Assembly: GCA_964035545.1 (NCBI GenBank)
Contig: OZ037766.1
Location: 20,138,767-20,202,766, forward strand
Length of the DNA stretch: 64,000 bases
Direction of reading: 5' to 3'
DNA from: Bugula neritina
Taxonomy: Eukaryota > Animalia > Bryozoa
Shown here: piece after piece, positions 22,901 to 40,900 of the stretch
Layout: every line of letters begins with the position of its first letter
Position numbering within the stretch: the first letter of the stretch is position 1
The notes under the pieces: model-generated
What the model was told of the DNA's origin: nothing
Databases searched by the model: none
Seen by the model: only the letters and a program-made list of their open reading frames with translations
Made by a program: the position numbers and the translations under genes

Positions 22901-25864
22901 CTTTCTTATCTGGTTTTGTTATTAATGGTAAAGGATTGGTTGCCTAAAATTACACAGTGATTACAGCAGTCTGTGACTTCAAATGAAATAGTTATAGCAA
23001 AACATGCCTGAGTTTTTAGCCTTTTTATTTTTCAACTCATTGTGAAGTTTAAAAAAGCTGTTGTAAGATATTCTTTAAAATACTGCATTCCAAATAAAAC
23101 AACATTGACTTGAATATGAATTAAGGTGTAAAAAAGCAATATTTTATCAGAAGCTGTGTTATTTGATACACCCTTAGTTTGCTAGCACTCGGGTAAATGA
23201 ACAAAACAATTTTTGTGTTTACCCTGTTGGTAGTATAATGCATGTAAAATATATTATTTAAATGCTTTGTGTATTATTAGAAGCTGTTTTCAAGCTCACT
23301 AATTTGAATTTATGTAATTTTTGACATATTGTAATGGATTCTCATCCTCTATTGTTCTGAAATAACTGCGTGCATCAGTATACTATAAATACTGTTGCGT
23401 ATCGTTCTTAATGCTGTAATTATAGTTAAAGGCGGTAAGCTTCCAGGTTATTTATTACATTTGAGCAAAAGTTTGCATGCTTTTCAACTGTTTTATCGGC
23501 ATTTTATCCAATTTCTTATACGAAAACACTACAAAAATGTAAGTAAAAGTGGTCATATTAGGTGTCTTGGACTTGCCCAGACTTGCCCGCGAGCGTGCCC
23601 TCCGTGTCCTATTCTGACGTGGGGATGGCAAAATAGCCCTATTGTAGCGTGAGTTTATATCGCGTAAAGTTATTAAGAAGCGGGTTTGTCACAGATTCTC
23701 GTTATTCGTAGTTCAAATCACATGAATGTTACTCTTCGGGCGGCTAGCTTGCTAATGCCTAAGTATGGTGATTACTGTTAAGCTTTCAGCATAATGTAAT
23801 TTTACTGAAATACGCATTCTGAAGTTATGTAATATTTCTTTTACTAATGTTGCTTTCTGTGGGCTGTAAGTATGCCGATGCCGTTAGCGGCGTAGCAAGA
23901 TAGAGTGCTTAGGTACACAGCAGGGGTCAAGGATCTCTCCTCGTGCTGCGCTGCGAAACAAAAGCCTCCATGAATCGTGTGACAGTGTTCGACTGAGAAC
24001 GTTTATATCTATTAGAGAGTTTAGCAAATTCAAGTTTCTAGTCATTGTATTCTGGGCGAATACGGTGATTTGCTGGGCAGATCACGGGTGGAGATTGGGG
24101 TGACTAAGGGGTGGTTTGGAGGTCACGGTGACAGCTTGGGGCTGTCGATATACTCATATATTATTATTCGTATTATAATTATTATTATAATCATTATTAT
24201 AAGTTACTGCTAGTCTCCGTTATTTGTTTTTGAGTCTGACTCTCGTATTAATTTGCACTTGCAGGTAACACTTTCTTTTGTGTGTGTCCTTTGTTGCTGA
24301 GATCGGCATTTCGGTCTTCCGAAATGCCGATATGCCGAAAATCGGCGTTTCGGCATTTCGGAGTCCCGAAGTGCCGATATTCGGCATTTCGGAACCCCGA
24401 TCTCGGCAACAAAGGAATGTCTTTGTCTCGCTTGTATATAAAAGCCAGCGAGTTCCAGTGTAGTTCAGACTACTACTGGAGCTCGCTGGTAGTAGGACCA
24501 CATAAGCTGTATTTGATGCTAATAAAGTTATCTTCATTCGTATTCAGATACTTGGCTTATTCTCTCTAGAGCATGTAGGCACTAGTTGCATTCAAAACCC
24601 ACAGTTTACTACAATATATACTGTAATAAATATACGTAAATTCTCAATCAAAATCAAAGCTATAGAAAAACAAAATGCTTGCAAATTCTATTAAACTATT
24701 CCTATACACTATGTATTCTTGCAACACTGTTATAAACCTTGATACTATCTCATGTCATGAAAAAATTAGTTCTTCATGTATTTAGTGAGTTTCATGTTTT
24801 TGACAATATATTATTGTAGCAAGAGAGACAACTTCTAACTTTCACAATACCCTAGATAAGCATGTAGTCAAATGTTTAGAATCAATTTATATTTATGCAA
24901 ACTCTTTTGTTGTGTAACATCAATGCATGAACAATTTATTAAATATCATCTACTCACCTGAAAAAGGATTTCTCCATAATGGAGTGCATTTGGTGTGACA
25001 GAGGAAAGTACAAGATCAATAGTGTCGGAATATAAAACACATTGGTGTACAGTTGAATCAAGCACAAAGGAAGAACATCTCCTTGTCTTCAGACATTTCT
25101 TGGAGCAACGAGAAATTCCAGTTGCTATAACATAACACTATATTACATTACACTAGAAGATTATTTGAAATTCTAACTTGACAAATGTAACTTATTTAAT
25201 TTAATTTTGTGAAGCCAACATTATATCATTTTAAGTTGAGTATCTCTTGTTTAACATTCTTTTTAGCTAAATTGCTGGGTAATACATTATTTATCACATA
25301 TGAACTTGTTCACACTGATTATTTGATATCTATTCTTCTAGATTCTAGAATTTAGACCATTAATTGAAGCAGAATTAATATTGCTATAAGCTATAAAACA
25401 GATCATATAAAACTACTTGATTGGTGATGTTTATTATACTAATTATGAATAATAAAAAGTAAAGAACTACTTTACAATGTACAGCCCTACACTTGATTAA
25501 TTTATATAATCATTACAATATTAGACAAAGCTTTGTTGAGTTCATCACAAGTCAATGGCTTACCAAGTCAAAACAGAGTCACATGAAGTGTTGCTTGAAG
25601 TTTACTGGCAAGACCTTAATAATACTATAGTATTTAATAAAGCCTTCTATTATCAAGTCTCTCCATCGGCCCCCCTCTTCCCCTTCTCTCTTCCCCTCTC
25701 TCCCTCTAATATAAATATTATACTATAAGTTTACTCTAAAATTCCCTTGCATGCTTATCTGTATGTAACATGTCACTTACTTTCATCGTACCGTCCCAAA
25801 ATACTACCATAACTTCCTATCAAGACAGGGTTTTTTGTTAATTTATAAAGTTGATCTTTCACTT
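16969..25864 (-). CDS. Fibrinogen-related protein with an N-terminal PAN/Apple-like domain and Thr-rich linker; first exon uncertain
   Basis: Exons 25781-25864, 24958-25124 (CSKKCLKTRRCSSFVLDSTVHQCVLY, PAN-type cysteine spacing), 22814-22943 (T-rich, ends YPQ), 21309-21521 (DC...WCD...WAVIQRRLDG...WRTYAIGFG...EYWIG), 20210-20346 (NDNLHILT), 19242-19377 (HNGKCFSTHDNDND...NCA), 16969-17117 (GGWWYHSCYTSNLNG...stop). All phases are compatible. Confidence 0.88.
18211..18636. mobile_element. MITE with ~175-bp terminal inverted repeats and probable TA TSD, in a fibrinogen-gene intron
   Basis: GGGTCATTTTACTTAATTTAGTACACACTGG... at left pairs with ...CCAGTGTGTACTAAATTAAATAAATTGACCC at right; TA on both flanks. 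Confidence 0.85.
19915..19987 (-). mobile_element. tRNA-derived SINE head or tRNA-like pseudogene
   Basis: GCCCTTGTGGTGTAATGGTTTAGG...GCTTGCAAGCCGGAGGTCTGTGGTTCAAATCC has A and B boxes but poor stems; shares GCTTGCAAGCCGGAGGTCT with 27533-27602. Confidence 0.6.
20440..21010. repeat. Compound satellite: (TAGTG/TAGTA)n, (TA)n, (ATAGC)n
   Basis: Directly visible; explains the YIYI and MLCYA ORFs. Confidence 0.93.
23330..24613 (+). mobile_element. Solo LTR related to the Gypsy element at 38174-45915, in the opposite orientation, with a nested insertion
   Basis: TGTAATGGATT...ACTACA ends with ATAT TSD (23326-23329 and 24614-24617). Homologous to the reverse complement of 45319-45915, including the CCGAAA/TTTCGG array, TATATAAAA (about 24435) and AATAAA (about 24521). 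Confidence 0.9.
23858..24270. mobile_element. ~413-bp TG...CA element (solo-LTR-like), copy 1, nested in the Gypsy solo LTR
   Basis: TGTGGGCTG...GCAGGTAACA flanked by CTTTC direct repeats (23853-23857 and 24271-24275); near-identical to 38658-39067. Confidence 0.9.

Positions 25865-40900: not shown

Follow-up and report, generated by a model that had tools for sequence, protein, structure and literature searches.

Two closely similar elements of about 410 bp lie in a 64,000-nt window of the genome of the bryozoan Bugula neritina (assembly GCA_964035545.1, contig OZ037766.1, positions 20,138,767-20,202,766 of the forward strand). Unless a contig or locus is named, positions given here are those of the window. 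Both elements are solo long terminal repeats (LTRs) of a 5.3-kb retrotransposon family, and they were inserted in two separate events, 33 bp apart, in the unique 3′ (U3) region of LTRs from a different family of Gypsy elements, here called the host family. A preliminary description of the window had proposed that the element homes to the host LTR, just upstream of the CCGAAA array within it. Searches of the entire 216-Mb assembly do not support dedicated homing of the 5.3-kb family to the host LTR or its array. The double insertion is probably ordinary nesting: a young family inserted twice in a soft, integration-prone stretch of U3 that is not specific to one family, and its copies collapsed to solo LTRs.

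Copy 1 is 413 bp in length (23858-24270) and copy 2 is 410 bp (38658-39067); both are on the + strand. Each has TG..CA ends (TGTGGG...GTAACA) and is bordered by a 5-bp target-site duplication (TSD), CTTTC for copy 1 (23853-23857 on the left and 24271-24275 on the right) and CTTCA for copy 2 (38653-38657 and 39068-39072). The copies are ~95.5% identical end to end, with 15 substitutions and three gap columns, and their alignment ends precisely at the TSDs. Comparison of the window with itself by BLAST reveals no third copy of the unit in the 64 kb. On re-reading, the coordinates and TSDs in the preliminary description prove exact, and its remark that the window holds no further copy agrees with the self-BLAST.

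Copy 1 is found in host A, a solo LTR of the host family on the + strand (23330-24613). Host A has the termini TGTAATGG...ACTACA, a 4-bp TSD of ATAT (23326-23329 and 24614-24617) and no adjoining host internal sequence. Copy 2 is found in the 3′ LTR (38174-39255) of host B, a full-length host Gypsy element on the - strand (38174-45915) with PR-RT (protease, reverse transcriptase) and RH-INT (RNase H, integrase) frames; its 4-bp TSD reads ATAG on the + strand (38170-38173 and 45916-45919). When the insert is set aside, the 5′ LTR of host B (45319-45915) and the 3′ LTR differ by three substitutions and a 70-base indel in the length of the array. Host A aligns with these LTRs, and both units are thus inside homologous Gypsy LTRs, as had been stated. 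The uninterrupted sister LTR of host B retains the empty site 2, a single CTTCA at 45728-45732, where the overlap between direct-repeat families D3 and D4 is precisely the TSD. The sequence TGAAG at 23820-23824 in host A had been put forward as the empty equivalent of site 2, and this is confirmed.

Copies 1 and 2 are two separate insertion events, which took place at different times and involved two subfamilies. In host LTR coordinates the TSD of copy 2 is at 184-188 and that of copy 1 at 217-221; the measured distance of 33 bp is close to the ~30 bp first estimated. Both units are on the + strand of the chromosome while their hosts are mutually inverted, and therefore copy 1 is sense and copy 2 antisense to its own host. 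In addition, copy 2 matches without a single difference both LTRs of each full-length copy on C9 and C4; for copy 1 the nearest LTRs belong to the full-length element at C7:8.71 Mb, from which it differs by two mismatches and a 6-base indel. The preliminary description had already argued for independent events from the differing TSDs, positions and opposite host-relative orientations, and the finding that each unit is nearest to a different full-length copy adds to that argument.

Copies elsewhere in the genome show what the units are. The assembly contains 17 close copies of the 413-bp unit (92-100% identity), plus older relatives and fragments. Fourteen of the 17 form seven pairs, 4.88-4.90 kb apart, that enclose gag and pol. 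The analysis drew on the sequences of all seven pairs and of one solo copy outside the window. Since the same sequence is found as paired direct repeats around gag-pol, the units are LTRs; the two in the window, together with a third outside it, are solo LTRs that would have formed by recombination. The preliminary description had offered two possibilities, a second LTR family or a tiny self-contained non-autonomous unit, and had looked to paired copies enclosing gag-pol for the parent. The seven pairs, with their gag and 1073-aa pol, bear out the first possibility, and the second fails because the unit is the LTR of a coding element. The earlier suggestion that a 5-bp TSD, as against the 4-bp TSD of the host, implies a different integrase also stands: the difference is real, and this second LTR family has its own integrase.

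The 5.3-kb element has LTRs of 404-419 bp with TG..CA ends, and a polypurine tract before the 3′ LTR. Its gag product is 355 aa in length with Retrotrans_gag and zf-CCHC matches, and its 1073-aa pol product has the order PR-RT-RH-INT (protease at residues 30-125, RVT_1 at 264-380, DUF7047 at 443-500, RVT_3 at 521-599 and rve at 743-830). Both frames are open, at identical lengths, in six of the seven full-length copies, and the two LTRs of a copy are identical in four of the seven. The closest protein matches (72-75% identity) come from a bryozoan and a sea spider, and are unnamed. Domain order and the CCHC gag point to a family of Ty3/Gypsy type. Perfect 5-bp TSDs, all different, are present at all ten young insertions, i.e. 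the seven full-length and three solo copies. The element is young, apparently autonomous and probably active.

The primer site of the element is unusual. Directly after the 5′ LTR come 12 bases (L035:2411-2422) that match, as an exact reverse complement, bases 1-12 of tRNA-Phe; this site, directed at the 5′ end of the tRNA, is identical in six of the seven full-length copies. The conventional TGG-type site complementary to a tRNA 3′ end is not found in the 5.3-kb element; the host element has a normal TGG-type site. The genome contains five exact matches to the 5′ 25-mer of tRNA-Phe.

The sites chosen by the 5.3-kb family were compared by means of the 1.5-2 kb that flank each copy. BLAST of the host LTR and of the whole host element against these flanks places the host LTR at two of the ten young insertions, both of them in the window; it is absent from the flanks of the other eight and of the older relatives. 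The latter are 75-88% identical to the unit, and one of them abuts internal sequence of a host-like element. No CCGAAA/TTTCGG motif is found within 300 bp of the other eight young sites. There are no tRNA genes in the window or in the 16 copy-bearing loci, and none within 1.5-2 kb of any insertion site. The AT content of the targets is ~78% within 40 bp vs ~65% in the surroundings, and around the TSDs of the ten young insertions there is no target consensus beyond this AT-richness. The flanks of many young insertions match other repeats, even within the small set of loci compared, and two insertions (C7:8.71 Mb and C9:4.29 Mb) lie in a single abundant repeat with at least 804 candidate copies. 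Copies of the family are found in the central thirds of large contigs.

The loci of these two insertions are L031 (C7:8.71 Mb) and L032 (C9:4.29 Mb). At L032, the repeat with at least 804 candidate copies contains a 1.14-kb element that has 364-bp terminal inverted repeats. The spot it occupies in that repeat is 5-8 bp from the spot occupied by the 5.3-kb element in L031, and the 5.3-kb element of L032 is nested in the 1.14-kb element itself, at the inner edge of one arm. L031 and L032 are a second case of different mobile elements at nearly the same spot.

The host LTR family is a small target. Pattern searches of the genome give 74 LTRs with the U3 module that bears the sites and 93 with a nearby anchor, which corresponds to ~0.02-0.03% of the genome. 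An anchor in the repeat (R) region has 526 genome matches and is unsuitable as a census of host LTRs; related host subfamilies share only the part from position ~280 onward. With insertion uniform over the genome, the probability that at least two of ten insertions fall in the host LTR family is 2-3 × 10⁻⁶, and it is 0.8-3 × 10⁻⁴ if only 10-20% of the genome is open to insertion. Two of ten insertions within 14.8 kb of each other have p = 0.0065, and a null model in which both land in the window for regional reasons gives ~1 × 10⁻⁴. The double insertion is thus unlikely to have arisen by chance.

A third foreign LTR adds to the picture. The letters of ~33 host LTR copies were read, and the remaining copies were covered by coordinate-only pattern searches. 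One of the LTRs read carries a 408-bp TG..CA solo LTR of an unrelated family (L069:2181-2588 = C2:26227680-26228087) at position 196-199, with the TSD ATAT; this position falls between the sites of copy 2 and copy 1. A second solo LTR of the same 408-bp family (L068:1094-1501; TSD ATAG) is near the 3′ end of another host LTR, at ~575. The 408-bp family is abundant, with at least 275 candidate LTR matches that are paired 7.1-7.8 kb apart and represent elements of 7-8 kb. Foreign insertions in the ~33 readable host LTRs are thus at ~101, 184, 196, 217 and ~575. In the pattern census, the sole interruptions inside a 35-bp stretch are copy 2 and the L069 unit, with copy 1 just beyond. Seen from the sites of both copies, the palindromic array of the host LTR is 30-90 bp downstream and the TATA box ~200 bp downstream. 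A weak hot spot in the host U3, not specific to one family, is plausible but unproven.

Ordinary nesting, the probable reading, would have proceeded as follows. Full-length 5.3-kb copies would have integrated by means of their own integrase, each making a 5-bp duplication, and recombination between the two LTRs would then have removed the interior and left a solo LTR. The family inserts where DNA is AT-rich and dense in repeats, in central chromosome regions. The double insertion would reflect a soft, integration-prone stretch, i.e. the AT-rich U3 just upstream of the palindromic enhancer-like array, and the integrases of at least two unrelated LTR families may have used it.

Several points weigh against this reading. 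The excess occupancy rests on two insertions that were picked after the fact from ~3,370 windows, by which the significance is inflated, not erased. The hot spot itself rests on three insertions, and the clustering of three of the five foreign insertions within 38 bp (184-221) has a scan p of 0.10. The unrelated family has the TSDs ATAT and ATAG, and a motif preference of its own may explain position 196-199. By the pattern census the stretch is intact in ~72 of the 74 host LTRs with the U3 module, and AT-richness does not single out the 184-221 stretch within the LTR. Finally, the contigs from public runs are short and none bridges an insertion junction, and the solo state is read from the assembly.

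Some of these points lend themselves to pure coincidence, by which the family, having no local preference, would insert or persist in DNA dense in repeats, and two copies would by accident have landed near each other in an abundant LTR family. Repeats surround most of the ten sites, two points within 33 bp on a 600-bp LTR are not rare (p = 0.11), nor is the clustering of three in 38 bp, and the case was selected from a large number of windows. However, with insertions confined to 10-20% of the genome the probability of two in the host LTR family is still ~1 × 10⁻⁴ to 3 × 10⁻⁴, the 14.8-kb proximity by itself and the within-window null are also low, and between the two sites there is a third insertion, from an unrelated family. 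Coincidence is an unlikely explanation.

Less likely is dedicated homing, in which the integrase would be tethered to a factor or structure at the CCGAAA/TTTCGG array of the host and would insert just upstream. Two subfamilies, in independent events, did insert 33 bp apart and 30-90 bp upstream of the array, and random models give this a low chance. A further hint may be seen in the 7-mer GCCGAAA/TTTCGGC, which is common to the host array, the acceptor stem of tRNA-Phe and part of the primer site of the 5.3-kb family, and which could indicate a common ligand. Since eight insertions are far from any such motif, this sharing is better treated as a curiosity than as a mechanism, and it may be coincidence. 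Dedicated homing is unsupported: eight of the ten young insertions and all older relatives are elsewhere, with no array nearby, and the enrichment near CCGAAA/TTTCGG arrays anticipated in the preliminary description is not seen within 300 bp at the other eight sites. In addition, 72 of 74 host LTRs are unoccupied, and an unrelated family with another TSD length has used the stretch, which points to the target and not to the 5.3-kb integrase. The preliminary description had also pointed to the integrase C-terminus. By eye, the translation shows an SH3-like segment followed by a charged, low-complexity, disordered tail, but the 243 residues after the integrase core have no Pfam match to a chromodomain or other known tethering domain at E values up to 5.

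A related proposal places the cause in the target. The 38-bp U3 stretch would then be a true integration hot spot, made by a bound factor, a cruciform or a positioned nucleosome at the array, with a possible link between the tRNA-Phe primer site and the array in the case of the 5.3-kb family. This is a tentative idea, of about the same low probability as homing.

An assembly artefact is very improbable, whether through collapse of a full-length element to a single LTR or through a false join of sequences. The identity of copy 2 with other LTRs is a situation in which assemblers can collapse repeats, and public reads are present as short contigs only. Nevertheless, the TSDs are perfect, the junctions are clean and the sister LTR has an exact empty site. 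The contig depth of the LTR, ~9x that of unique flanks in the likely source run, is of the order of the copy number in the assembly.

Slightly less probable still is a self-contained non-autonomous unit, i.e. a lone LTR-sized piece of TG..CA DNA mobilized on its own. Two of the three solo LTRs are very young, copy 2 being identical to the LTRs of intact copies, and a lone LTR has both of the end sequences needed by an integrase. Against this, the same sequence is the LTR of seven full-length elements, and just three solo copies indicate no amplification as a separate family. Solo LTRs also form readily by LTR-LTR recombination. A non-autonomous family of the TRIM (terminal-repeat retrotransposon in miniature) or LARD (large retrotransposon derivative) type is ruled out, as the unit occurs solely as the LTR of coding elements and as the three solos.

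A single ancestral insertion, which gene conversion or rearrangement would have copied or moved from one host LTR to the other (the two are homologous and inverted, with just 14 kb between them), has next to no probability and is refuted by the differing TSDs, positions (184-188 vs 217-221) and host-relative orientations, and by the 15 substitutions between units that are each nearest to a different full-length copy.

Recurrent nesting of this kind has a precedent in plants, where one LTR family may be found again and again at comparable positions within another, in both orientations and with tens of bp between sites, and where LTRs are the least-used region for nesting (Jedlicka et al., 2019, PMC6911290). 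The Bugula case is alike in that one nested family has entered one original family more than once at comparable positions, with sites tens of bp apart that represent separate events. It differs in that both insertions are in the U3 of an LTR, in that the genome is that of an invertebrate animal, and in that there are two events only.

Other systems offer partial parallels. Tf1 of fission yeast, and murine leukaemia virus (MLV) by way of BET proteins, integrate close to promoters or enhancers. The Bugula insertions may be similar in that a promoter or an enhancer-like element begins a short way downstream of them (the array at 30-90 bp, the TATA box at ~200 bp). Unlike Tf1 and MLV, the 5.3-kb family is one without an identified tethering domain or factor. 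As with Ty1/Ty3 of budding yeast, repeated insertion in a small zone has left nested solo LTRs of different families. Ty1/Ty3 (and also TRE5/DGLT-A) are targeted to genes transcribed by RNA polymerase III, whereas no tRNA gene lies within 1.5-2 kb of the sites of the 5.3-kb family. With chromoviruses the family shares the PR-RT-RH-INT order, a 5-bp TSD and accumulation in repeat-dense DNA; it differs in its integrase, as even at E = 5 no chromodomain is detected in the 243 residues that follow the core.

Gypsy elements of the 17.6/297 type in Drosophila have an ATAT target and a 4-bp TSD. The host family (TSDs ATAT and CTAT) and the unrelated 408-bp family (ATAT and ATAG) resemble these in having 4-bp TSDs at ATAT-like motifs, with two sites per family only. 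The likeness does not extend to the 5.3-kb family.

The host LTRs have several properties of their own. Palindromic arrays of GCCGAAA/TTTCGGC-like units are found at 24300-24400, 38380-38560 and 45545-45640. The first of these is the array of host A, which begins ~30 bp downstream of site 1 and is followed by a TATA box at ~24434. Host A holds two foreign insertions, copy 1 and a ~320-bp repeat (23426-23745; LTR position ~101) that is unrelated to the 5.3-kb family. The repeat has at least 114 candidate copies genome-wide, and the 40 that were scored are 99-100% identical. It is absent from the other host LTRs, has no internal repeats and gives no Rfam match, as is also the case for host A in an Rfam search. 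The ~320-bp repeat looks like a very recently amplified short element whose ends and TSD are not delimited.

Around positions 209-282 the host LTRs have a modular structure (L054, L062, L063, L065, L066, L069; L058-L061; L052). Some LTRs have an additional copy of LTR bases 1-93 after position 219, and in others bases 1-219 are missing. Tandem duplications also occur in some, either of ~20 bp at the 184-221 stretch or of bases 128-265. In L055 (C7:11968878-11969216 and neighbouring sequence) a deletion in a host element joins LTR position 334 to internal position ~1523.

Two other types of repeats are present in the window. A 1078-bp inverted repeat (32066-33143 and 35021-36098) has arms that are 99% complementary, with 1.9 kb between them, and could represent either a foldback element or a DNA transposon whose terminal inverted repeats are long. 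Positions 5217-5400 and 20649-20864 are two blocks of one short-period tandem repeat, which match in both orientations.

If the U3 hot spot is true, it would provide a compact, sequence-defined case for the study of target choice by integrases in a little-studied animal lineage, and of the ways in which elements disturb one another's promoters. For now, the finding is mainly one of ordinary nesting by a very young and probably active family, which is now documented by seven full-length copies, six of them open, and by an unusual primer site.

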